The notes beneath the pieces are model-generated. The model had not been told where the DNA came from. It ran no database searches and saw nothing but the letters and a program-made list of their open reading frames with translations. Positions 1 through 57,447 of a stretch of 64,000 nucleotides of DNA are shown here, piece by piece; the first letter of the stretch is position 1; each line of letters opens with the position of its first letter. The translations under genes were made by a program, and so were the position numbers. The DNA is taken from positions 2,685,644-2,749,643 of the forward strand of contig BFEA01000046.1 of the NCBI GenBank assembly GCA_003427395.1. The letters run 5' to 3'. The DNA is from Chara braunii. Its lineage: Eukaryota; Plantae; Charophyceae.

Positions 1-2056
1 AACACAAACACAAACACAGACACGTTGTCGCGCGCGGCGGTCCCGCAACCCAATGAGACCGCTGAACCTCACGGTCGTGTCACGCAGGATTTATTTTCGT
101 AGAACAACTCGTCACCACTCCAACCGTGCGCGCGTGCTACACCTCTCACGACGCCCTGCGACAGATCGGGACGTCGCGAGGTACAACTTACCTCTACCCG
201 AGGGGCTGTCACCACCCTCAGGTAGGCGTATCCCTGCTGAGCTACAGACCCACGTATGAAGGTTTTTACATGCCTGAACAGAGGTAGGTCGGCCGAGGGC
301 GTTTGCTCGATCGCTGTAGCATGAAAATGGGGTACGCGCGGTAAGACGCCTAGGACTGACCCGTTAGATATTCAGGTCGAACTTTGAGATGGTCGTCTAT
401 TTCCGCTTCTGTTCCAAAAACACACTCCTTCTGATTACTATGTTCAACGTATCAAAACCCTATCACTACCAAAGATAAACTATTATACTCAATGTATGAC
501 TGATCATCAGATAATATATAAGACTTAATTATGAATAGTGAGGTATTACCGCTGAGAACCCTTCCCACTTTCACAAGTGTTGAGTGTCCAAACTCTTCAC
601 GGTGTCAATTCCAGTCCAACCCAAATCATGCACAAAACAGACCTGCACAACATAATGCAAAGACAGTTCACATGCCATGCATTAACGGCGTCAACCACCA
701 ACCACTGACATTGTCCCTCACTCCCCAAACCATGCATGACAGCTCTATCTTTCCTGGGATGCAAGCCCAACACCCTCACATTTATTCAAAGGACCCTTGA
801 GAGTGACCAGCACCATTTAGGCGATGACCACAGGTGACAGTTTTACTGACCATAGGGTTTGTTTTTGGATGTAGGTGCCAAGTCAAAGTGGAAAGAGTTG
901 AATCGGCAACGACCGACCTGTTATCGAGTGATAACAGAAAATTGAGTCCTTTATGTAGAACTCCTCCTTCAACTGCAGTAGACCAAAGCAAAGACCTACA
1001 CACACACAGGTCAACAATGATTCAACATCCCCACTTCATTCCCACATAATGATGTCTAAGGATCAAACCCTTAGATCCGGTTTGTGAACTCTGGGATCAA
1101 CATCCCAAAGTCTAACCAATAACTTCTATTTACTCTGAGCCGTCTGTCACACCTCCTCATTTTATTTTAAGAAGTTTCTTGCCTATGTCCTAAGTCCTCT
1201 TAGGGAAATTCATATTTCCCCTACTTTCAGTCCTTTCATTCTCTCTCTCGCGGATAAGCACACCCTTTGATGCTTTATGCGGTAGTCTGGCTGAGATCAA
1301 CTCAAACCAGTGGCGTATTCTACGATGAACTGCGGTTATACGGGGTGTCTTCTTTCTCTAATTCATTTTCCCCACGGTATTCACTTTCTTTTAGGTTCCT
1401 ATTAAAGGACTTTTGGAGTCGCTCCCGATGGAGCACTCCCTTTTTCCTTTCTCTTCTTCTTATCTTGGCATACGCAAGTAGTAGGCTGATTCACCTGGGA
1501 ATCTTTCACTACTTAATCGATTCCAGACAATCTGTTAGTCAGAAGAGTAGTCGAGTCGACCCACGAGAGCACTCAGTCTCCCCTCAATGTCCATGAAGTC
1601 CTCGTACAACCAAGCAGTTCAAGCATTATAGTGCGAGCGATCGGATAACTCACCCGGGAGTATCCCTTTATTAGTTAAACAGGTAGTTAGGAGGTCTATG
1701 TTGAGCCGTCTCAACACTTGACCCAACATTCAGAAAACACTCTAGATCCAAATGTCAATTCTAAATCAAAGTTAGTAACAGGCGGTCTTCACGGATGCCT
1801 CCTATTACTGCTTGATTCAGAGCTCAGTCTTTTCCTCAAAAGTGTAGTAGGACGACCCTACGGGAGTCACCCTACGACTTAATTAGAGTCAGACGAGCTG
1901 GGATTATGTTAATGGACTCAGGCAGACACCAGATCCTCCTTTAACAGGAGTATCTTACCCGGTCTGTTAAGGTGAGGTTAGAGAAATAGCGGGATGACCC
2001 CACGGAAGCCTCCCATGTCCTTCTTCAATGTTAATCAGGTGGATTGTTTATATCGT

Positions 2057-3360
2057 ACATTAGTCATACCTGAACAAGTCCTAAGGTTACTCACCCAGGA
2101 GTATCCCTCTACTTGTTCAACATAATCGCCTTACTTTTCCTTCCATTAGTTGACCTCCAAATCAAACAAGTGTTAGGATAACCCACCCGGGAGCCATACT
2201 ACCACCAGTTTGATGCATAGGAGATTAAAAACAAGTCTTAATTGAGTTGCCCTGACAGTTCACCTATCTGGCCTATGCGTTGTAAGTGAGCAAAAGGCAT
2301 GTTGACTCCCACGGGAAGTCGGATAGATCGACCCAGACTTAGGAGTTCGTACACTCACCCGGGAGTACTCGAATTCCTCCCCAGTCTGGTTCGATTAGTG
2401 ATAGGAGAGCTTCACGGAAGCCTCCTGCTACCTTTTGCCTTTGTTAGCTTTTGAAGACGAGTACCCTACGAGAGTACTGGATCAATTGACTTTCGTTAAG
2501 TTGAAAAAGTGTACCCCACGAGAGTACCGGATCAGTGGTTGTTGTTAAGCTAAAGAAGCGTACCCCACGAGAGTACCGGGTCACATGATTGTTGTTAAGT
2601 TTGAAGAAGTGTACTTCACGGAAGTACCGGATCACATGATTGTTGTTAAGTTTGAAGAAGTGTACTTCACGGAAGTACCGGATCAAATTGATTTCGTTAA
2701 ATTTAAGGAATGTACTTCACGAAAGTACCGGATCAGTTTGACTTTGTTAAACTGAAGGAATGTACTTCACGGAAGTACCGGATCAATTTGACTTTGTTAA
2801 ACTGAAGGAATGTACTTCTCGGAAGTACCGGATTAAAAAGACGGTTGTCAATGTAACTTGCTTGTTAATAGGGAAGATGCACGGCATCTTCCTGTTACCA
2901 ATGTCAGAGTCAACCAATCATTATACCAATTTGTTTACTTTAGTTAGGTCATTAGTATCAAACGATGCCAATCCATTAGTCCTACCAAAACAAGTAGCAG
3001 GGTTACTCACCCGGGAGTATCCCTTTTACTTGTCCAAGCACAATCAACTCATTCTTTTCTTGTTAGTTATTCCCCAGATCAAACGAAGTATTAGGATAAC
3101 TCTCCCGGGAGCCACCCTAATACCAGTTCGATGTGTGGGAGATCAAGACCACTTTTGGGTTAGTCGCCCTGATCGTTCATGTATTCGTTTATGTATTAAA
3201 TTGAGCAAACGATATTGTTGACTTACACGGAAGTCGCACAGATCGGCCTAGACTTTAGGAGTTCGTGCACTCACGCGGGAGTACTCAATTCCCATCCCAA
3301 GTCTAGTTGGATCAGTGATAGGAAAACCCCACGGGAGCCTCCAATTACCTCTGCTTTCGT
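2057..3360. repeat. Diverged ~390-bp direct duplication (2057-2440 and 2973-3360)
   Basis: Shared collinear blocks: cattagtc..ggttactcaccc.ggagtatccct..tacttgt, ttaggataac, tgttgact..cacgg, cagact.taggagttcgt.cactcac, agtgatagga. Confidence 0.85.
2455..2835. repeat. Tandem minisatellite, 8 units of ~50 bp, each carrying one GTAC..ACG..GTAC hairpin
   Basis: Cores at 2461, 2511, 2560, 2611, 2662, 2712, 2762, 2812. Confidence 0.95.
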
Positions 3361-4375
3361 TAGTTGCTTGAAAACGTGTACCCCACAGGAATACCGGACT
3401 AGTCATTGCTTTGATTAATCACATGAAGACATGTACTCCACGGGAGTAACGGATTAGTATTGGATTTAGCTGGTGAGTCAAGAGAGAAGATGCACGACAT
3501 CTTCCTGTCATCAATGTATGCATGTCAAAAGTTAACTAGTTAGGTAGATGGCTGGGTAGTTTGCACGACGAGTACCCTTTTAGTCATTCCATGCAGGCAG
3601 TTTGACGACCCCGATAGAGGCCTCCATTATACTGCCTTTGTTTTTCTTAAGACCATGCAGGCTAAGTTCCTTCTTGGTTCTTTCCTGGGTTCCTTTTCTG
3701 ACATCAGGCACATTCTAATTTCAATCATATAGCTCTTTTGCTTTTGGTGTTTTAGTCCTGAAGAAAGCCATAAACAATATATCGTACAATCATACAAGCA
3801 GACAATAGAAGGGTGTAGCCTTTAAGGGTATATGGGAAAAGAATGAAGCGTGCGTACCTTAAGGTTCCCTGCCTTCAGAGTTCCTCCTGAACTCTGACAG
3901 AGCTCCCACAATCGCCCTGTTGTCTGTTTGTTTGAGTATTTTTTTTCATAGAGTAGACTTCCCAAAAGATATCGTATCTTTTCATATAAGTGTGAAAGCA
4001 AAAGGAAGTAAGGGGATTAGTTTACAGGAAAATAGGGAAGGATGGAGGAGGTAGGTACCATCACACGGTGAAGAGACCCCTCTCCTCTCCATTACCCCTT
4101 ATCTCCTCAAATCTGATCTTTCCCACTTCCTTTGACATCAATCAATCAAGGAACCGCAAGATAGTGCTTACGAGTAAGAACGACAATAATGATCACAATA
4201 ATAACCTCGGATAAATATGGAGTAGTGAAGAAAAAGCGGTTCAGGTACAGGGAGATGAGAGAAGGATGGAGGAGGTAGACACCATCACACGGTGACGGTG
4301 TCCCTTTCCTTTACAGTGCCCTGCTTCCTCTCCTTCCCTGGCCCATGATGCTTAATATCAAGAATAAGCATAATC

Positions 4376-43499: not shown

Positions 43500-46400
43500 C
43501 ATGGATTAGAAGGATGTTTTTTTGTATGTTCCTATTTTCGATGAAGCTTGTTTGAGAAGGGTGGATGATGTCTTCCATGACCGGAATCATTCTATTAGCT
43601 AAGGCTTTAGACAACGTTTTGTATACTACTGTGAGAAGAGTGATCGGGCGGTAATTTATGATATCTATTTTGTCATTTTTTTTTATAAGACGGTCAGTAT
43701 CCTTTGCGCCACTCTTTCACCCATTTCCCCTGTGAGCCATACTTCTTTATAGAAGTCCATAACGTCGTGGCTCAGGAAATCCCATAACAATGGACTGGTG
43801 AAAACCAGAGAAACAGACCAAAACCAGAGAAATCTTATAGACAGAAAAACATAAACGAAATATAACGTATTTCGACACATAATGGTCGATTTTACACCGT
43901 TTTGTGTTTAAATGTCATTAAAAAAAACCCTCAAAACTAGTACATATTCGAGGTCGACAACGCAGTTGAAAAAACGAGCCCCTTTTCGAAGAGAACAGGC
44001 GACCCCTAGTCATGGTTGGCGAAAAGGTTTCCAATATATGAAGATTTGGGTGGATGTCGAAACGAACACTCAGTAGTGTACAGTGAATGCAGTTTTTTTT
44101 TGCAAACAGAAGAGTCTTTTCCGGAACCAAATCTAAGGACTAAAAAACTGAGCAAAAACTTTGTAAACCGAACAAATGGGTCGGTAATCCTCGTTTTTTT
44201 TCACTTTTAATATCAAGGAAATAGAAGTTTGAAAACGAAAGTAGTAAATTCACGGACTCCAGAGCAAAGCAAAAAACAAGCAATGAGAACTGATTTCAAA
44301 TCTCCAAAAGTCGAGTGCAAACGATTGAGCAAATTCGACCGACAAGAAAATTCAAAGAAATCCAAACATGACCTTATAGGCCTATAACACGAATTTTTGG
44401 ACATTGAAAAAAAAATCGAATTTCACAAGAATTTGAATTGACCCTTGTAATTCTCTTGAAATTCGAAAGTAATACTTTTCGAATTATAGGCATATAACGA
44501 GTGCTGGAAAATGAACGACTGGCATATGAATTTGAGTCGGTAATCTGTCAAGTGCTTGTAACCCTATAAATGCATGATACAACATTGAAAAATCGGACAT
44601 CCAAAATTGGGCAACTTATAGCCCTATAACTTAAAAACTAGGAGTTGGTTCGAAAACGTGAAACAATTGCTTTGTCAATCGACAGTTGAGATGAAGGCAC
44701 AAAAAAACGTTCCAAAAATGGTCACTATTTTCGCCTAAACGCAAGAAAACCGAAAGTCCAGAAATTTTTGAAAGGTAATATGTCAAGCGTTTGAAGCCCT
44801 GAAAACGCATACGACATCGTTGAAAATCTGTTAACAAAGCTCAATGAACTTAAAGCTCTAAAACTTTAATTGAGTAGTTGAAACTTGAACTGCAAATCTT
44901 TAGTCAATTTTTAAATTCTCAAAATCGAAAACTAAAAGTACGCAAAATGCAAAGAAAAAGATCACCAAAACAAGAAAGGTTGGCCACACATGCCTGGCTA
45001 AACGGGTCATGCGAACTACGACCTACGAATGTACAAAACTTTACAAGGGTTTAAAAACCAATAACGATTGAACTCATACAATCGGACGAACAACGACAAA
45101 ATGAAACCTGCTTTGATGCGGAACTAGAAATGACCTCAATCGCGATGACTCTCTGACAACCTCCTGAACAAACGGTTCCTGAAAGGTTTTCCTAGTCAAC
45201 ATCCTCCGTTGCCATTGAATTCAACATCTCGGTTATCTTTTGTCGGGTCAGCGAAAATAAGGTTTTGTCTGTCTTCAGTTGGAAGTTGTAATAAAGAACT
45301 CCTCATCTCCACTCGTAGACGTCCTCGGAAGGCTCTCTCGTAGTTTTTCCTTGAGGATTTGTCTTGAATCGAGGATAGTAACCTTCTCCTTTCTCACGTT
45401 GTGCAAACCAAGCAACTTTGAATCGTTTATCGACTAGCAGTTCGGCAACCTTGCCAATGTGGTAAGGTTTGCCTCTCTCTTCCTGCCCCGGACAAACTCG
45501 TAGTGCGATGAAAGTGTTGACCTCGAGATCGTCGTACTTTCCGTCTCTGTCCTCTCGGAACTATCTCTTGTGAGCACCGATGTAGACGGGTCTCTCCGGA
45601 GGGAAAAGATCATCCCAACGTTGATCGAAGCCAGCAGCGGTTGAAGAAACTTCTTTACCTGGTTTGCTGACATCAACTTCGATAGAGGGTCACACGAAAA
45701 ACTCTTTGAGACTTTTGTCCTCAAGGTCGAGTGTTTCCTGCGTTGCTATGAACTTATTCCGCCACTCATGTTGTGGGGTTGAGCATAATTCGACAAACCT
45801 TGAACGTTGGCTTTCAAGGCTGCGATGGAAAATACATCATCATCAACCTTAAATTTCGAAGACCCTCCTGTTTCTCAATTACGAACATGACCTTCGTTGC
45901 TGCCGACCTTGTCACGCCTCTTGTCCTCACCCCGACAAGTAAGCCGAAATATGGCTTCCAAAGATCGGATTGCATGTTTTGGCGAAGCTTGAACTTGTCC
46001 TGTTGGCTCTGACTTGAAGATGTTCAGATCTTCTCTATTGTTCGGCTGCCACTGCGAATTATGATATTGCTTGCTCCAAATGCGCACCTCTCCGTCGTCG
46101 TTGCGCCTTATTCGGAAATGTTGATTGAAACTAATATCATTGACATTTTGTAGATGATCCTGAATGTACAACTTCCAATCCATTGTTTTCGTCATCTCCT
46201 CAACGTAAACGCCATGATCTTGTTCTACCTTGTATGACTCCCTAATGATGTGTTGCAACTCAGGAAGATCGAACGCATCATGTACAGCCAGCTTTCTCGA
46301 GAAACAGTTGAACATCTGATCGATGTCCTCGTGTGTGTGACCCACAAGAAGAAAGTTTAACTGAACTTTACTAAACACTCTCATCTTTACTAAGAAAACA

Positions 46401-47431
46401 AGATACGCTAACACAAAGTTGTTCTTGTTCTCTTTCGAAGTGTTATCAAGTGTGAGATACAAGACTTTTGAAAATGGTCTAGGAAGTTGAGAAATCCACC
46501 GATGAAGAACAATCAGCATGCAATTAGAATCGGATTTGAAGTTGTCAAAGAACACAGTTGCAAAGGCAGACGATGAAAATCCTAACACCTTGGCACCGAC
46601 CACGTGAACTTTCACAAAGTTCCCTTCTTTCAGTTTCGAATCCTTTGGAATCCTTGTGAAGTGTGGCAGTATGGTCTTGCTCTGATCCATACCATCAATG
46701 ATCATTGCGATGTACTCTGTCGGTCGGCTGGAAGCCTTGTGGCGATGCTTACTAAGTTTTTGTCTCTCTTCTCCTTGCATTAACCGGTGCTTCTCTAGTG
46801 CCTTGCCGAACATTGCTGCGCAAAAAACGAAAACAAGTGAATACTTTGTCAAGACTCGTTCACAAAGAGAGACCAAACCCGAATAAGGACCCGAAAATCC
46901 AAGCCGAGTACCACACAATGTGTTATAGGGCTATAACTCATAATAAAATCCAAGCTGATTACCACACAACGTGTTAAAGGGCTTTAACTCAGAATAGTCA
47001 GTCGACAAGTGTCGTACATTAATAAATTCATTCTTTCACAAAATCTTTGTTTTAATTAACAGAAAGAGTATGGGCAGGACAACGAAGATGTCACTAATAA
47101 AGTTTTAGTCTCTTAGAGATAATCGGTTGCAAGGACGTAACCAAGAACACTCAGTCGCCTCAAAACAGAAAATTACAGAAGTTGTTCCTTAAAAAACTTT
47201 CTAGTTTCATGATAATTCTTTCTCGAATGCGCTAATTGCAATATCTACTTTTGTACAAATAGACAACATACAAGGTTGTAAGTCATAACAACCAGTCGTG
47301 CTGTGCCAAACGTTGAAGAATGAACACTGAGGTGTTTTCATGAGAAACGTCATTAACCATATCTTTTGCAACTAACTGTTTACGACGAAACACAAATTCT
47401 TCGTAAATAAACACAAATGTGAAAAAGGAAG

Positions 47432-47498
<67 letters not shown>

Positions 47499-47836
47499 AG
47501 AAGAAGAAGAAGAGGAAGATAAAGACTTAGGGAGAAAAGACGAAAATTTTTATGAGAATCTTTTCTTGAATGCACGAATCTCAGTTTCTTTTTTTCTGTA
47601 AAGAACAACTTATAGGGCTATAAGTCGGAACAGTCAGTCGATCTGTGTCACAAATTGAAGAATGAGTTAGAACAGCCGGTCGCGTTGTGCCGAACTTTGA
47701 AAAATGAACCCTATCGTGCTTTAATAAGATACATCATTTACCAGATTGTCTTTAACTTATTATTTGAAGCGAAACACAAATGATTCATTTGTCAATACAA
47801 ATGTTAAAAAGTCAAGTAAAGAGAGACAGATCAACT

Positions 47837-47897
<61 letters not shown>

Positions 47898-49287
47898 AGA
47901 AGAGATAGGAAAACAAGGAAAGAGAAAATAAGCATTGAGGTTCTGTCATCACCTCGTTCCAACGCACTGGTTACCTGTGAATGACCTGTCTTGAATTTCA
48001 GACTTGTGGAACAAACCGAGAACCTCTTCAATGCAGGAATGAGAACTTTGGGGCAGTGAACCCTCCAAATCGTCATAAATCTGGAACGGGAAGGAAGAGT
48101 CTTCTTCGTGTAAAGCGCTTTGCAGTCTCGCTTGAAGAAATCATACACGTCTCTTCGTTGGAGAGTATCTGAAAGATGAAACTGGTTGCTATTCGGCATA
48201 CTCTTAGTGTTAAATCGAAAATATTCATGCAACCAGGCCAGAATTTGTTGTGATGAAGCAGATAATCCGACTGAGACTTTGTTTGCATGCTCGTACAACA
48301 CTAGTCCATCTCTGAAGTCTTTGCGTAGCCTTGCAACACGTGTAGTCGAGCATCTGTACAACTTTCCCCACGCTTTTGTGCAAACCTTTATGCCGTTGAA
48401 TGTCACTTTTAACACCTGTAAATCTCCATCATCGGATAAATACGATGCAACCCTCATCTCTGCGAGAAGGAAGTTGACTTGCTTAGGTTGTTTCATCGCC
48501 CAAAATTTTTCTTGCTTGTAGAAAACATCTTCTACCATGAACTTCATGTAACATTTGGCCTTGCAGCAATTTTTCTTGAGAACTACTTCGACATTCTTCA
48601 TGTTCACGTGGTAGTTAGCTTTCTTGTTGTACACACGTACGTTTTTGCCGCGCTCTCCCAAGTTGTAAGGAGGTTTCTCGCTCTTGCTTGATTTGTTGTA
48701 CAATCCTCTTCTCACCTCTTGTGCCACTATCTGCTTCGCTTCTCCTAAAAGTTTTCCAGATAGACTCTTCGTGAACATGTCCACATCAACTTCTGACGCG
48801 TCCTTTACTTCATTGTCCTCATAGTCTGTGTCTTCTGATTCCTCATCCTCGCTCAATTCCTCCTCCTTGTCATCGTCGTTTGATTCCTCCTCCTTGTCAT
48901 CGTCATCGTTTGATTCCTCCTTCTCGTCATCGACGTCACTCGATTCCTCCTCCTCATTGTCGTTGTCACAGAATTCTTGCACAATACAATTGTCGCACAT
49001 TTCTTTCACAACAAAGTTTTTGCTCAAGTGGTGTACATTGTCGATCTCTCTAGATTGTTCGCCTTACGCGTTTGGGCACAAACGCTTCCTTGGGCGCTCT
49101 ATCTGGATTGTACTCCCACTTTTGCCAGTTGCGCAGACACCTTTCACCATGTTTGTCGCTCGCTCTGGCGCAATAACCGTTTTTGTTGTTGTCTTCGATC
49201 GTGGGCGCTGTCGAGCGCATCGGTCCGGCACTGCTCGTGGCAGCGCAGGACCCTCTCGGCCGCTTCACGCAGGAGTTGGACTAACCT
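43500..49287 (-). mobile_element. DNA transposon carrying the above transposase; 5' side interrupted by the insertion at 49288
   Basis: AT-rich 3' flank with palindromic TTATAG-NN-CTATAA repeats also present in the intron; TIR not identified, left boundary approximate. Confidence 0.6.
45875..49027 (-). pseudogene. Sola-like/DUF7869 DDE transposase, two exons (49027-47953, 46815-45875), decayed C-terminus continuing to ~45100
   Basis: IIDGMDQSKT.LPH, LYLTLDNTSKENKN, FLLVGHTHEDIDQMF; N-terminal CCKAKC, VCTKAW, MPN, RFSVC motifs. Phase-1 GT-AG intron 47952-46816 joins ALER|AMFGK in frame. Confidence 0.85.
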
Positions 49288-52200
49288 TGTCATGAACACG
49301 CAGATGGAGCTTCCTTAGGCCGCTCCGGCCTAGTGCGCCAGCCATACCTCTCGCGAGCCCCTACGACAGGATAGGGCCTACGCGAGGCAGAACTTACCTC
49401 CACCTTACGGGAGCTGTCACCTCCCTTCGGTGGGTGTATCCCCGCCGAGCTACCAGTCCACAGTACGAAAGCTACTTGGTTGCAACCGCAGAGGTGGACC
49501 AGCTGAGGGCGTTTCTCGTTCGCTGTAGTATAGGGGGTACGCGCGGTAGCATGCCCATCGGACCCGCACGCGAACCGACATCTTGGGGGTCTGAAGTTCC
49601 AAGCGTGGTTCGTCGTCTGTCGGCTAGGACGCATCCCACTCACCACGCATACAATGCTCTACGATACAAAAGGGAACACACACACACATATATGTGAGAC
49701 GACACAACGCAAACAACGCGACAACGCTCCTAGCCCCTAGTAGTCGTCCCATAACCTTTCGATGCGGAAATCGAATGGGCGTCACGTGCGAGGCTTAGTA
49801 TAAGTATCGCGCGGACACGGGGCTACTCATATTGACTCGCAATGCAAGTGTACACAAGCGGTCACAATGATAGCGTACTATGTAATATCCATACTCACGT
49901 GGCCCTCGTCAATCTTGAGGGTCGCGTTCGACACTCAGGTGTCGGCTGACAAGCGCCTTGAGGGACAATCTCTCGACGCCAGACAACCGCCATGTGCGGT
50001 TGGAGACCACACACTCTTCTGCACCTTGTCCAGAGGGGTTGAGTAGACAGCTTCAAGCTGTCGTGGCGGTCGAATATCAAGGGGTTTGACTTTGACGGCT
50101 GCCACGGACTATAACGTCCAATTAAAAAAGCTCAAAAAAAGAATTTACTCCAACTCACATTGGTTTAGTGGGGTCCAAAAATGAAATGGTTAGGCGGACT
50201 CAAACGGCGCGCGCGCGGGGGAGGCCCGCACCCAGACCCCCAGGCTACCCGATGTCCGAGGAAATGACAGTCCGTACACGGGTTTCCATAGGCCGACTGG
50301 GGCTAGTCCTTCACCCATGTGTCGCTTTGCGGTACCAGGAACCCGAGCCTATCAGCCATATCGCGTCTTTGATCTCGCCGCCTGACCCATAACTTTTAGT
50401 GCAAAAGTCGGCGAGTGCTGCGTGCAAGGGCTTAGTATAACATCGTGCGGGCGCAGCACCCACACATACCAATTCGCTATGCAGCTCTACGTGAGTATTT
50501 GCGATGACAACGCATTATATGGTGCCAATACCCAAATGGCCGGTTCTGAGCCTTGGGGTTATTTCCGACGCTCGGGCATTGGCTGAAGTGCGCGCAACAA
50601 GAGGGTNNNNNNNNNNNNNNNNNNNNNNNNNNNNNNNNNNNNNNNNNNNNNNNNNNNNNNNNNNNNNNNNNNNNNNNNNNNNNNNNNNNNNNNNNNNNNN
50701 NNNNNNNNNNNNNNNNNNNNNNNNNNNNNNNNNNNNNNNNNNNNNNNNNNNNNNNNNNNNNNNNNNNNNNNNNNNNNNNNNNNNNNNNNNNNNNNNNNNN
50801 NNNNNNNNNNNNNNNNNNNNNNNNNNNNNNNNNNNNNNNNNNNNNNNNNNNNNNNNNNNNNNNNNNNNNNNNNNNNNNNNNNNNNNNNNNNNNNNNNNNN
50901 NNNNNTTCCTGCCCTTTGTGCCCCCCCCCCCCCCCCCCCCCTTTTCTAGTCGCCCCAACCCTCGATTAGGCCCTTCGTACACGGGCACCCCAGGCCGCGC
51001 TAGTACCCCTATGTAGGTACACATACATACGTACATACATGTATAAAGGGAATAATTATGTGACGATCACTTCTCACAATCATAGTGGGTCCCCTCCTAG
51101 CCATACATATATGCACGACCGCAAGGCAGTCCAACCAAAACCCCAAGTCACTGAACATACCTGCAATCACATCAAAAGTCAAACAAGAGTCCACGCACTA
51201 CACGGAGTCAACCCCAACCAGTTCCTATACTTATACCCCTCCCTTAAGCCATGCAAGCCCCAACCTCCTGCCAACCAACCTTAGTTAAATACTCAGTACC
51301 TTTGTTAAATGACCATTCAATAAAAGTCTGGGTGAAACCTTAACGAAACAGAAAATCACCAGGGCTAAAGCCTTTTAAGGTTGAGTATTGGGAGCGAGTT
51401 GAGGTTGAGTCGAAGACCGACGAATCGGCAACCGACCTCTTATCAACGATAACAGCAGATGATCCTCAAGGGATCAGCTGGACTTAGTCCAAGTCCTGAA
51501 TCAGATCGATCAAGCTGGCCTGTAACACAAGACAGGTCAACGCCCAAGACTAAATCTGTAAGCCTTATGCGAACTATCTTCTATATAATGGTCTCATCTA
51601 ACCTTCTGGTAGCCAACTAGGTCCAATCCTAGTCCTAAGTCAGGGCTCAAAGAAAAGGTAGACCTTTGGCTGGGTTTCCCCTATACAGAGTGGACTGCCA
51701 ACTCTGCCACCTTTCATAATATAATCTAACTCCTCTAAACTAAGGAAATTTCAGCAGCGCTTCCCGTAGCAAAACTGCCTTTCCAGAATTTATATAAGCC
51801 TGAATATAAAAACAGGAATAGTCTTTGACTTTCTAAAACCCAATTTTGTCTAACTCCCTTAATTAACAAAATTTTGGGCTGGACTCCTTTTAGAAAGGGG
51901 GACTTCCCAGATTCTTACTAATCCATATATGATTCAGACAGTTGAACTTTTGGAAGGTCAGAGATTTGTCTAACTCCTTGGATTTGCACAAATTTCGGCA
52001 GCGCTTCCTGTAGAAAAAGTGGCTTACCAAGATTTATACAAGCCCAAGTATAAGAACATATATCAGAAAATGAAAAAATCGATCTAAGTAAAAAAAAGCT
52101 ATCACAGAAAATGCGGGAATTGAATCTAACTCCTACAACTCTAGCACGTGGCGAGCCTCTACAACAACTATGTATCAACTCAAACTCTGACTAGGTAGTG

Positions 52201-55200
52201 ATGCCACTCAGTCACATGCAGGTCAAACAACAAAGGTAAGTACTCTCACCATCCCAGGTTGGTTCAACAGTCATTAGTTCATAGTCTTTCAATTATTTAA
52301 CACTTTACACCCTGCTTACATAGGGCATTGGGATTGGCTATTCGTCTCAGAAACAATGTCAGCCTTCTGTCTTAATTATACACGAATAGGTTGCACAACT
52401 ACTTTTCTCTTCATTGGGCATATGACTAAGCCATTCATCTTAGAAACCATGCTTAGTCGCTCTGAACTGTTTAAATAGCCAAGTTATATATACCTTTCTG
52501 CACCTTAGTCTTCAAAAAGAGGGCGTAGGGTTGAGTCATTCATCTTAGAAACAATGCCCAGCTTGCCTAGGTTACCTTCAGTTATAACTCTTGATTATGC
52601 TCTCTTTGTTTGTGATAAGGCTATAGTCAGGCCATTCATCTTAGAAACAATGCCTGACTAGCCTTGTTTCTATATAAGTACATATATATACCACATTATA
52701 GAGAATCCTATTCCTTCATCCTCATTATGGTCGTGAGGCCTCAGACTCAGACCATTCATCTTAAAAACAATGTCTAGTCCTCTGGCCCTGAATCCTCCCT
52801 CAGCACAAAAAAACTATCAAGGAGAGATGAGTTATTCATCTTAGAAATAATGCTCAGCTCTCCCCTTTTCAACACACAAAAAAAACAGAGTACCCTAGGT
52901 CTGACCCAGAGACTGTTCAGAAACCACCCAAGTAAAACAGCGGCCAGATCATTCATCTTAGAAACAATGTCTGGCCCTCAAAAGTCAAGCAAGTAATACC
53001 CCTCAGAAATAAGTAGCCAGACCATTCATCTTAGAAACAATGCCTGGCACAATAAAAAAAAAAACACAGCAACCAAGTCATTCATCTTAGAAACAATGCT
53101 TGGTTCTTCAGAAAACAGAACAAAACACAGTGGTCAGGTCATTCATCTTAGAAACAATACCTGACCCTATAAGACCCGTTCAATTGCAAGCAAAACCGCC
53201 TTCCTCCCAACCTTCCCCATGATGCATCCCTTTGTGACAATCTGCTTTCCGACAAACAAGAAACTGAAACTACCATTATACAAGCATTCCTTTAGGTAGT
53301 CTGATTTGTGTCCTGAAAGTCAATCCCAAAAAGTCAAAGTAGAGGTTGCACTCAGCATAGTCAATCAATACATGGGGAGGAATGTAGATAGGGGTTATAC
53401 TGGTTTTACAGGGACAAGCAAAGGTTACCTCTGAGTTCTCTGCCTCCCGAACTCCTCTTGAGTTCCGGCAGGGCTCCCGCAATCGGTGGGGCAACCTCCC
53501 ACAGAGGCCTTGGCGCGGATTACGGGTTGCAATCCCGCCTGCCGCCTTCCTCTCCAAACTAATGGACTAGACTAAGAGTGAGAAGGGCAGAAGAAGAAAC
53601 ATTAAGTCTCTCAGATACAAGGGGGGTGCACCTCAGACTCGCATGAGAGGGCCTTGATGTCTTCTGCGCCTGAGGGCCCCGCAATAATGGCCAAATACAA
53701 CAGCTTGGTCAGCTCCCAAAGTCAAACAACAGACTCCGACTCTTCTGACAGACTCCCCTACCACAGTGGTAGCCCCCCCCTCTTGCGCTACCCCACTCTC
53801 CAACCAGCCTTCCGTTCAGCCCAACCTCAGTCATCCAACACTAAACAACCATATCCAAGTGTTGCAGCAATTTGAAGTGGGCTCAACAGCCACTACTGTG
53901 CAACAAGCCACAACGACCCTTTGTGCGCAGTCAACAAGGACAACAACCGTGCACAGTTGACACGGCTACTCCAGCAACGGCACCGCGGTCGGCAATAAGT
54001 GCGGCAGCTACGGTATCAGAAACCCAAACGCTGTAGGTAGCGGAGCAATCTGCAGATAGTAGTTCACAGCGCAGTTTTGACGGTCACAGGCCAACGCAGC
54101 AGAGGGCGCCTATCCTCCGCCTACTGTAACAACTCACCTTCCGGTGCCAACTCGCCGCCTCCAGCCCTCAGTAACGCAGTCCGCGGGACACAAATGTTGT
54201 CTGTAGCCAATGGTACCGCCGGTAGAAGCGTTTTGCCATAACCAAGGGCAGTTGGCAGTATCCCCTCCCTGCACGGTCTGGCTTCTTCCTTAAGTCTGGG
54301 CACCTCTCCTTAGACTGGTTGCTGCCGTACAGCAATCTGAACCGCAGGTAGCTTCGCGGAGCCTTGACATGACACTGTACCCATAGCACTTTGCACGCAG
54401 TCACAAGGTGTCGTGGCAGCCTATAGTAGCATCCCTCACCCGCCACCCATACCTTGTTTGTACAACAACTCAAAACCCCGTAGAACACCCAAGAAAACTC
54501 GGTTGCACAGAGGGCTGGTACAACCAGACCGTGCACACCGCAACCACTTCCGCAGCAAGGCACAACACAACCAACAGCACAATGCGGCTTCAGCGACCCC
54601 GGTAGTCAGTAACAAGCACAACAGCCATTGCAAGTAGAACTACCGCTGGCTCGCCAGTAACAGAACAACACCAGGTATCGTAGCCAGGATGCGCAGTGCG
54701 GAGCGACTTCTCAAACACACGGTGTTGGTAGTAGCCTCTCTCGCAACTCTACCACCGTTCAACTCTTGCAGTACCTCTTCCCGCAGCCCAAACACCTCCC
54801 TCACACTACACCATTTGCTACTCGACACAAAGCAACAATCCTCCCTTTTCAGGTGGCTTTCACTCTTTGACAACACAGTAACCCGCAATAGTGCTATAGC
54901 AGATTCCACAGTTAGAGACCAGCCGCAAGACACGCAGTCACAGAGCAATGATATGTTATATCACGATAGCATGCGGGAGCCACAGCTTGTAACAGTCTAA
55001 AGCACAGCCATCGAGACGGGCCCAGCCGCAGCCAGCGTGTCAATCACGATACTCAGGTGGCATAGCAACGTTGTTGCCTATACAGCGGTCGGTCAACAAC
55101 TGTAACAGCAAAGCACCGCTGCACTGTGCTTCAAAACCAACATCCCACGGATAGACTATTGCCACTACAATAACGGAGATCCAAACTACAATGCACCAGT

Positions 55201-56435
55201 TCGAGATCAGTCAGTAGGACTGACTCGAGGCTTAGTCGCAGGCAGCTCAGAGACCGAGCAACAGGGGTTCGGTCATCACACTTGCCATCAGCTATGGACA
55301 CGGCAACTTTGCGTAATAACGGAGCGCAACAGCGCCCTGTAACAGTGAGTGACGAATCGGTCAACCCGAAACCGTCGACTACAACCTCTTATTTTCCTTA
55401 CCCCCCTCTCTTTTTTCTGTATAGTAGTCACGCACTACTTCTTCTACTTACTCCTATGATAACTCCCGCATCTATCTCACAGTAGATTTGTATTCGGCCT
55501 GGCCTAAAACCCTCAAACCGCCTGTTCCCCCTCACCACCCTATCAAGGAACGAGTCGGGTTCACGTCCTCTGCCCCGCCACCTCCATTCTCTTCGACGTC
55601 TCTGCGCGCAGCCCCTCTGACTGCTAACTCACGTTCCGCCAATTCTCCAGCCGTTCAGAGTTCACTAACTGACTCGCCTAGACCAACACCCCCGGATCCA
55701 TCGCTTCACCTGCCCAACTTGACCAAGGGGCGGGCAAGTTATCTACCCACAACCACGCTCGACACATTCCCCGCCATCTCCATCCTCAGTTCTGCCTGCA
55801 TCAGCACCGCCTCGCGTCCGACTTCATCCCTCGCCCTGTCCCCTTACCTTTCCTTTGCCGCTCTCCTGCTGCGCCCCGCCCGCTGCCTCTCTTCGCCCGT
55901 CTCAGCGCCCGTCTCCATCGGGCTTGGCACTGCAATCAGCCCAGCCACGGCTCTCCTTCAACCTCGAAGGCACCTGGCGCGGTGTCGGAGGGCACGACTT
56001 CCCGGCCCTCGTCTGTGTACCAAGCCCTGCTTGGTACCAGTTCTTGTACCAGCTCCCCGTTTTGATGTTCCAGCCTGTAGATATATAATGGACCCCTGTT
56101 GTCCCTAGCACCCAAGCTGTGCCTTGGCATGGACCAGTCCCAGTGGCAGTACCCCCGACAAAAAGGGGTGCGCCACAGGACTTCCGTTGGTCCACGCAGG
56201 CTCGGCGCCCTGCTGTACAGCAGAGCACGATCGGCCTGTGGCCGTGGTGGCCGCCGGGCTCGCCCTGGGACGCGGAAGTGAAAGGACTGGCGCGGTCTTT
56301 TCTGTCGTATGCCGAAATCCCCTGTACAGGGTTATGGGTTAGGTGCACGAAATAAAGGTCGCTAAAAAGAGAGGAAGCAAAGCGCCGAATTTGAACTCAC
56401 TTTAGTTCTGGGAAAATCCAGCGGCTTCGGGCCAC
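49288..56435 (-). mobile_element. LTR-retroelement-derived segment B, related to segment A, no gag/pol visible
   Basis: TGTCA start interrupting the transposon; homology to 110-355; internal hairpin array. Confidence 0.5.
52334..53166 (-). repeat. Array of 10 bulged stem-loops with constant core CATTCATCTTAGAAACAATG
   Basis: Cores start at 52339, 52432, 52537, 52633, 52753, 52833, 52950, 53023, 53079, 53140; each has its own self-complementary flanks. Confidence 0.95.
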
Positions 56436-57447
56436 TGTGATGTTACGATCCCCTTTCCATTTTTGCTTACTGATTGTTATTATTATTATTATTATTAATG
56501 TTATTACTTAATTTCCCAAATTTTCAGTTTCCCACTTGTCGGTCTGTCACTTCGCAGGGGAGGCCATCGATTCGGGTTTTCGAACTGCAACTGCAGCCTT
56601 ATGGCCTGGGGCTCTACTTACCCTTGTATATCGCCTGTACTAGACTCGTTCGTCCAAACCCTGTAGCGGGACCCCGATGGCCAGGTAAAGAGGCAGATAC
56701 AGTAAGGACTAAAAGGAAAAAGAAAAAAAAAAAAAAAAAAAAAAATGGTAAAAAGAAAGAAAAGGAACGAGAAAAATTGAAAGTCGGGTGCAAGATTTGT
56801 GCGTGAACGTGGATCGCTGTTCAGGCAAGGGTGCTGCGCGGAGAAATTTTGGGACGCCACCCTTTCCTTTTCAGCGATTAATATTATTATTATTATTATT
56901 GGTATTATTATTATTACTTTATTACTATTTAGTTTTCTAAATTTGGTTTTCAACCTGTTGGCTTATCCTTTCGCGGGAAGCCAACGGTTCGAATTTCGAA
57001 GCCAACAGTTCGTAGCCTAAGTAGGCCGACCTTGCATATACTATCCGCGGGTGAGCCCTGATCTGGCTCTGTGCGATGAGACCCCAAAAGAAGGGTGACC
57101 CGCGGCCACATTCGTATGAGGCCTATCACCCCCCTGTGCAGGGTCATAAGCCACCTCCTTGCCATCGAACATGGGTACCCGATGAAGATGGGCATGCGCT
57201 GCTATTTAAGAACGGAGAAGTGACTTCTAGTACTCCGTTATGGGACCACGGCGCAAAACCTGCAGTGATATTGCTGGGGTCTGGGACTGACAAGTGAGAA
57301 TTTAATACGTGATCGACCGTTGGGTTCTGGGTTGAGTATTAGTTTTTGAAAGTTAATTATTTATCCATTGTTATAAAATTCTTGAGAAGCGGTGGAGTCT
57401 GAAAAGGACTAATGAAAGTTCCTCATTCAGAATGCAGAGGAAAGCCC

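Follow-up and report, generated by a model that had tools for sequence, protein, structure and literature searches.

A tandem array of ten covarying hairpins with a constant apical module in a high-copy repeat of Chara braunii

A 64,000-nt stretch of Chara braunii DNA was analysed (the window, whose positions serve as coordinates throughout), and an array of ten hairpins was found at 52331-53166, inside a very high-copy repeat. Each hairpin carried a lower stem of its own under a constant 20-nt apical module, and a diverged second copy revealed that this top had been exchanged as a block while the stems of matching units were retained. The constant non-palindromic top, the compensating stems and the collinear order kept in diverged copies are most readily accounted for by selection acting on a folded single strand. 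With moderate confidence, we regard the array as a cis-acting structured element of an abundant mobile repeat, which would present some ten copies of one apical motif to a partner recognising its sequence. No published description of such hairpin arrays was found; the distinct top variant, the evidence of block exchange from collinear copies, the copy-number profile and a cautious reading of the RNA runs are new here.

Ten hairpins on compensated stems

Ten + strand matches to the core CATTCATCTTAGAAACAATG, with zero to three mismatches each, were located at 52339-53159, against a chance expectation of 0.01 in dinucleotide shuffles of the window. Cores started at 52339, 52432, 52537, 52633, 52753, 52833, 52950, 53023, 53079 and 53140, that is, 56-120 nt from one start to the next, and the number, positions and spacing given by the first-pass annotation were thereby confirmed. 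A pyrimidine (C or T) directly preceded the core in 10/10 units, and every unit had the same 20-nt top variant, with the loop AUCUUA (UAAGAU on the other strand). The spacers between units are not homologous, since Tandem Repeats Finder detected only the last 2.4 units as a repeat; the exception to this lack of detectable similarity was a 61-nt periodicity over units 8-10 (80% matches). The whole array, as delimited by core scan and alignment, and its units are listed below, with no strand assigned to any row.

52331-53166: whole array, ten hairpin units with non-homologous spacers
52331-52365: unit 1, degenerate; core TATTCGTCTCAGAAACAATG; stem with three G-U pairs and one A-C mismatch on the + strand
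52416-52462: unit 2; stem GACTAAG/CTTAGTC plus an outer tier GGGC/GCTC (family consensus GCCC)
52529-52568: unit 3; stem GGTTGAG/CCCAGCT, partly decayed; its counterpart in the second copy (unit b) has an identical 20-nt core
52617-52665: unit 4, strongest hairpin; two-tier stem AAGGC-TA-TAGTCAGG / CCTGACTA-GCCTT
52744-52779: unit 5; stem GACTCAGA/TCTAGTC with an additional bulged C; core variant G12>A
52822-52863: unit 6; 11-bp stem GGAGAGATGAG/CTCAGCTCTCC; core TATTCATCTTAGAAATAATG
52942-52976: unit 7; stem GGCCAGA/TCTGGCC
53015-53049: unit 8; stem GCCAGA/CCTGGC, with an A-C mismatch on the + strand (G-U on the minus strand)
53071-53105: unit 9; stem AACCAAG/CTTGGTT
53132-53166: unit 10; stem GGTCAGG/CCTGACC; final core base A private to the window copy (G in the family)

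Pairing was scored on an ungapped alignment of the ten units (A1), comprising the core and 12 nt on each side, against a structure of 11 pairs made of a 7-bp lower stem, one unpaired base and CATT/AATG. Standard pairs filled 90.9% of the stem cells, compared with 24.5-39.1% when the 3' partner was slid by 1-3 columns, which bears out the earlier claim that the arms are self-complementary in each copy. Two-sided changes were observed in 7/11 pairs, corresponding to all seven lower-stem pairs (18 cells), and the observed covariation score was matched by 0/500 column shuffles. ViennaRNA folded every unit into a hairpin on both strands, with stems of 11-17 bp and a second, outer tier in units 2-4 (GGGC...GCCC, AAGGC...GCCTT); the strongest, unit 4, reached -24.6 kcal/mol on the + strand and -22.7 on the minus strand. 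In the proposed design, each unit would combine its own lower stem (7-13 bp, in some units two-tiered) with one constant 20-nt apical module.

It had been claimed that each unit has a different stem. The stems do differ and the changes are compensated on both sides, but they are related variants of one ancestral stem, about GGYCAGR/YCTGRCC. Because the covariation was nearly all of the transition type, GC<->AU, with G-U intermediates, the array is considered to have grown by duplication followed by compensated divergence. Likewise, the description of uniform hairpins with a single bulge stood as far as the pyrimidine before the core is concerned, whereas units 1 and 3 proved degenerate and unit 5 had its additional bulge.

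A high-copy repeat and a second copy of the array

Copy number was estimated as the summed depth of Logan contigs from one DNA run, aligned over 50906-56900, and the repeat so delimited was the following.

50906-53705, no strand assigned: high-copy repeat holding the array, delimited by summed contig depth

The array lies in a very high-copy repeat, as indicated by a summed depth of 2,600-73,000 over 50906-53705 and of only 6-22 over 53706-55905; copy number fell sharply near 53705, where single-copy DNA adjoins, and the left edge of the repeat was masked by an assembly gap (50607-50905). The bins over the array had depths of 5,000-39,000, mostly below those of the flanking modules (30,000-73,000), and by contig depth the window-type top was 3-10x rarer than these modules, which fits the window core type as a minority of the repeat family. 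Four differences between the family majority and the window copy fell inside hairpins (52339 T>C, 52461 T>C, 52568 T>C and 53159 A>G), and all four restored Watson-Crick pairs. Mismatches within the window copy had earlier been taken as clues to the working strand; the ambiguity of the strand stands, but several of these mismatches represent private decay. Joints within DNA contigs (e.g., 52408>53019) were considered as deleted units and rejected, because a short contig that has aligned to a spacer can go on to match any one of the identical cores. In the GC-rich stretch directly to the left of the repeat, a 222-nt segment at 49335-49548 was found to share 73% identity with 130-343.

An exact-core scan of metagenome contigs recovered one real relative, BFBZ01008522.1 (hereafter L001), and one chance match; two exact-core matches in viral contigs were also dismissed as chance, as their flanks did not pair. 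L001 was 75% identical to the window over 52400-52677 and 79% identical over 53237-53698. When units were scored on their flanks only, the best scores lay on a collinear diagonal (u3/b, u4/c, u5/e, u6/f, u7/g and u10/k, with window units numbered and L001 units lettered). Changes between matching units were paired: in u4/c the innermost G-C became A-T, in u2/a one base pair was lost from both arms, and in u7/g a T/A pair was gained in both arms. The earlier proposal of selection on structure is supported by the covariation within the array and by these paired substitutions and indels between the two copies, provided that it is widened to include hairpin-templated maintenance of a folded single strand.

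The tops of L001 followed another pattern. Unit b had a 20-nt core identical to that of the window, units d-k had tops of the form CC..(T/A)(G/A)-AACTTA-.., and unit c was intermediate (UCCA-AUCUUA-UGGA), so that one array combined both top types, that of the window and AACTTA (UAAGUU when read from the opposite strand); the window lineage had a single top type in all ten units. Since the apical module differed wholesale between matching units, it follows that the top was exchanged as one block while the stems proper to each unit were conserved. Unit a had lost its core, the deletion meeting the upper end of the lower stem precisely (GACTAGA-CCAC-TCTAGTC), as would be expected had a polymerase skipped a formed hairpin.

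L001 also bears on the apical fold, which is ambiguous between CAUU/AAUG closing a 12-nt loop and a hexaloop version. The minimum free energy (MFE) structure from ViennaRNA contained a Y-G20 pair, an asymmetric internal loop, a 3-bp UUC/GAA helix and the hexaloop AUCUUA (UAAGAU on the other strand). L001 favoured the hexaloop version, with A(A/U)CUUA hexaloops on covarying helices such as CUG/CAG, CUA/UAG, UCCA/UGGA and CCCCA/UGGGG. Thus, the fixed loop noticed at first reading was retained as a constant core, but its 12-nt form is one option, and both the MFE structure and L001 point to an AUCUUA-type hexaloop. No Rfam match was obtained for the whole window at the gathering score or for 50906-54200 at E <= 1. 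A covariance model (R1) found only the ten units and unit b of L001, with no further array in the window or in L005, and a scan for hexaloop hairpins likewise found no other array.

Host element, working strand and competing explanations

In the reading that we favour, the array would act as a folded single strand, most likely the RNA of the element and possibly its first-strand complementary DNA (cDNA), and the apical motifs would be read by a partner, perhaps an element-encoded or a host protein. Differing stems and spacers would let every hairpin fold locally, and would leave reverse transcriptase or recombination little direct repetition to delete. A multivalent binding platform, with binding itself being what we infer, is a reasonable reading, and its role may lie in packaging, dimerisation, export or splicing control. 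The host repeat is probably a retrotransposon terminal repeat of Chara braunii.

Several observations weigh against this reading. The comparison involves two copies only, and the paired indels could stem from hairpin-templated mutation rather than from selection. No candidate protein was linked to the window copy as a binding partner. Self-BLAST found no second copy of 49-64 kb within the window, the open reading frames (ORFs) of 53.2-64 kb had no Pfam retroelement domain, no gag or pol gene lay beside the array, and no primer-binding site for the initiator methionine transfer RNA (tRNA-iMet) was found within 2 mismatches near the array. Transcription was assessed in three polyA runs (X5, X6 and X7), from libraries that cannot show small RNAs: the stranded runs X5 and X7 were nearly empty over the array, with about nine reads in total, and the depth of X6 followed the DNA contig depth (r = 0.95) at a near-constant ratio of about 1e-3. 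Finally, the clues to the working strand conflict, as described below.

Given that its depth tracks DNA copy number, X6 may represent DNA carry-over; its signal comes either from such carry-over together with some RNA or from many copies being transcribed pervasively at a low level. Coverage by X5 and X7 at 53306-53705 was rejected as array expression, as it stems from a separate 120-nt module at 53434-53554. This module was the sole clearly expressed part in these two runs (depth 20-50, all first mates on the + strand), and its expressed copies had other, consistent flanks on both sides, so it is common to another, transcribed repeat. A T-arm-like string within it (GGTTGCAATCCCGCC, at about 53520) was discarded as a tRNA, since ARAGORN and Rfam found nothing. 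X5 reads at 50953 were a library artefact, a poly-C stack running into the Illumina adapter (…AGACGGCATACGAGAT…).

The earlier assignment of the array to a retroelement untranslated region (UTR) was not established, because the high-copy repeat had no adjacent retroelement gene, no second copy of a long terminal repeat (LTR) and no primer-binding site in the window. The partner LTR could lie outside the window, or this copy of the array could belong to an LTR that is solo or truncated. On the right, copy number dropped at ...AATACA|ACAGC (53700), yet weak similarity to L001 ran beyond it, and no convincing target-site duplication was found, the left end being hidden by the gap. The string GGTATCAGA at 54011 was rejected as a primer-binding site, its three mismatches being at chance level. 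Ty3/gypsy genes were present at 13-23 kb on the minus strand, 30 kb from the array; the gag ORF had one database relative, a Chara braunii protein with 79% identity, and the 26.7-kb locus of this paralogue held no array. A homology search with the array ORFs returned nothing, and ORFs over the arrays had no database record; a tRNA scan of 50906-54200 and a phage BLAST were also negative. The array does not have the make-up of clustered regularly interspaced short palindromic repeats (CRISPR), as its arms vary, constancy is confined to the 20-nt centre and the host is a eukaryote.

The question of the strand is bound to two splice-like features that frame the array.

52205-52256, + strand: most abundant block of the family (depth 218,000 at 52229), with AAG|GTAAGTA at 52233-52243
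53262-53296, + strand: acceptor-like stretch conserved in L001, with CTGAAAC (branch-point-like), a pyrimidine run and TTTAG|G

DNA contigs had loose ends at 52205 and 52256. AAG|GTAAGTA contains nine consecutive bases that we take to be complementary to the conserved 5' end of the U1 small nuclear RNA, and together with TTTAG|G at 53296 it gives the array, from 52236, a GT...AG intron-like frame on the + strand. The predicted folds of L001 favour the other strand: each of its ten hairpins gained 2.5-11 kcal/mol in stability when folded as the minus strand, and the predicted pairs included 29 G-U on the minus strand and 4 on the plus strand, an asymmetry that symmetric decay after insertion would not be predicted to produce. 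This bias must be read with the caveat that the plus strand of L001 is A+C-rich overall and that shuffle z-scores were similar on both strands. In the window copy, 8 G-U versus 6 A-C gave no strand signal, nor did folding of the whole array, in which most hairpins were displayed on either strand. All of the array reads of X5 and X7 had their first mate on the + strand, which denotes minus-strand RNA if these are usual deoxyuridine triphosphate (dUTP) libraries; in X6, the first mate was on the minus strand in 63% of the array reads, indicating + strand RNA if the library is of the dUTP type. We therefore rate both strands as about equally likely. If the folded strand were first-strand cDNA, splice signals on the plus strand and G-U (G-T) pairs on the minus strand would no longer be in conflict. 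A second UAAGUA block was also noted on the + strand, in GATCTAAGTAAAA at 52081-52093, which places it 150 nt before the GTAAGT block; the UCUAAG in it could pair with CUUAGA, six bases of the window-type loop, and since one such 6-mer match is expected by chance it was given no weight.

These splice signals suggest another function, in which the array would be the body of an intron on the + strand and its loops would act on U1 or on the donor, setting the balance of spliced and unspliced RNA or marking the unspliced form. No piece of the family is more abundant than the U1-complementary block, and a given 9-mer is expected only about 0.02 times in 2.8 kb, both strands counted; the branch-point-like motif, the pyrimidine run and the AG were kept in L001; the loops of its units d-f read ACUUAC, the commoner AACUUAC loops copying the 5' end of U1 and being complementary to GUAAGU; and the majority of X6 first mates would agree with + strand RNA. 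However, no spliced read crossed 52235/53296 and no RNA joint was seen in any of the three runs, where coverage was too low to exclude splicing, and the upstream 'exon' was uncovered in X5 and X7. Moreover, the window loop AUCUUAG keeps only four bases complementary to the donor, although the donor is unchanged, and the G-U pairs of L001 favour the opposite strand. Splicing control by the array is consequently held to be improbable. An equally modest probability is given to the array being a functionless by-product of mutation, in which tandem-duplicated quasi-palindromes are kept perfect by hairpin-templated (template-switch) copying from one arm to the other during replication or reverse transcription. 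The paired one-base indels of u2/a and u7/g are of the kind that one template switch yields, the window copy has no strand asymmetry and the polyA RNA signal is very low; in addition, unrelated small covarying hairpins occur at 2000-3600 of the same window, so that hairpin-making may be a general habit of the repeats of this genome. Such copying explains perfect arms but not a constant, non-palindromic 20-nt top across ten units, and it leaves unaccounted for the block replacement of the top in matching units, the maintenance of about ten collinear units in copies with flanks only 65-85% identical, and the very high copy number of the family.

The two remaining alternatives are less probable still. 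Regular hairpins with unique spacers resemble polycistronic precursors, and it had been suggested that cleavage of the hairpins liberates small RNAs or the spacers themselves. This is very unlikely: stems of 11-17 bp are too short for Dicer-type precursors, molecule starts or ends did not accumulate over the array in the polyA runs, which are blind to small RNAs, and no Rfam small nucleolar RNA or microRNA match was found at E <= 1. That the units are binding sites in duplex DNA for a transposase or another protein, for instance the product of the DUF7869 gene 3-6 kb to the left, is the least credible of all. Subterminal repeat arrays are known in DNA transposons, and a DUF7869 ORF (45875-46918, minus strand) and a 398-aa ORF do lie nearby. 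Nevertheless, a reader of duplex DNA would conserve the sequence of the arms instead of permitting compensated variation, and the assembly gap and a GC-rich stretch of other composition separate the gene from the repeat.

Within the favoured reading of a displayed structural element, the exchange of tops allows a narrower and doubtful proposal, that the top is an exchangeable recognition cassette, the loop being a 'code' that co-evolves with its binder and distinguishes own from competitor RNA or cDNA. Arrays of one subfamily would then have a single apical module in all their units, and from one subfamily to another the module would be swapped whole on stems that otherwise match unit by unit. 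In a variant of this proposal the folded strand would be first-strand cDNA rather than RNA.

Other features of the window were recorded alongside. The DUF7869 ORF encodes 347 aa (E = 3.5e-47), and with the adjacent 398-aa ORF, which had no Pfam match, it spans 45875-49027 on the minus strand; look-alikes of the latter in Atlas were eukaryotic hypothetical proteins, some with DUF7869, and both ORFs probably form one transposon-type gene. AT-rich satellite-like blocks with 8-12-nt periodic repeats occupied 26.6-37 kb, between the Ty3/gypsy element and the rest of the window, with N runs at 27181, 29431, 32824 and 35822 (long assembly gaps). The unrelated hairpin family at 2000-3600 (+ strand) combined a constant apex, C-ACG-G or CCCGGG, with variable self-complementary stems: GTACTTC-ACG-GAAGTAC occurred about seven times, together with GAAGATGC-ACG-GCATCTTC and AGTACTCA-CCCGGG-AGTACT. 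It included a 50-nt tandem repeat at 2468-2833 and lay at lower coordinates than the minus-strand Ty3/gypsy element.

Related systems and biological meaning

The closest resemblance in design is to the engineered MS2/PP7 arrays, of which low-repetition versions were made to survive reverse transcription in lentiviral vectors. Both present one motif on serial hairpins, with stems and linkers varied for local folding and against deletion by template switching. However, the Chara array is natural, its apex AUCUUA/UAAGAU within a 20-nt module is unrelated to the MS2 or PP7 operators, and its junction base is a pyrimidine on the + strand (a purine on the minus strand) instead of a defined bulged A. 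Among natural RNAs, sponges of the CsrB/RsmZ type carry many hairpins with one conserved loop motif and bind many copies of one protein. They share with the Chara array the display of one loop motif on differing stems, but they are bacterial, have GGA loops, are encoded by single-copy genes outside any mobile element and have no sequence relation to it. The iron-responsive element, a single hairpin in mRNA UTRs, is comparable in architecture only (lower stem, single 5' bulged C or U, short upper stem and hexaloop), and it differs in loop sequence, with no relation and no Rfam match.

Retroelements also hold structured, covarying RNA in their non-coding parts, as in the packaging signal Psi, kissing loops, the constitutive transport element (CTE) of Mason-Pfizer monkey virus (MPMV) and the Rev response element (RRE) of HIV. 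Psi, like the Chara array, lies directly downstream of a strong splice-donor motif. The kissing-loop dimerisation hairpins of Ty1 are counted among retrotransposon cis-acting RNA elements (PMC5454406). Psi, the Ty1 hairpins, the MPMV CTE and the HIV RRE consist, however, of one to few distinct hairpins in place of ten or more repeats of one motif; in contrast to kissing loops, the Chara loop is not self-complementary, and the Chara copy is a candidate rather than an established part of a retroelement.

If the perfect arms were instead the product of hairpin-templated mutation, the array would be a striking natural example of that process on a genome scale. If it is a true docking platform, it would be a natural counterpart of the MS2/PP7 tagging arrays, the same design solution having been reached by evolution, and its loop could seed new orthogonal RNA-tagging pairs. 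The block exchange of the apical module between subfamilies would provide a setting in which co-evolving RNA-protein specificity could be put to the test. Chara braunii, as a streptophyte alga, is closely related to land plants, and a docking platform of this kind would offer a tractable handle on how its very abundant retroelements select, package or process their RNA.

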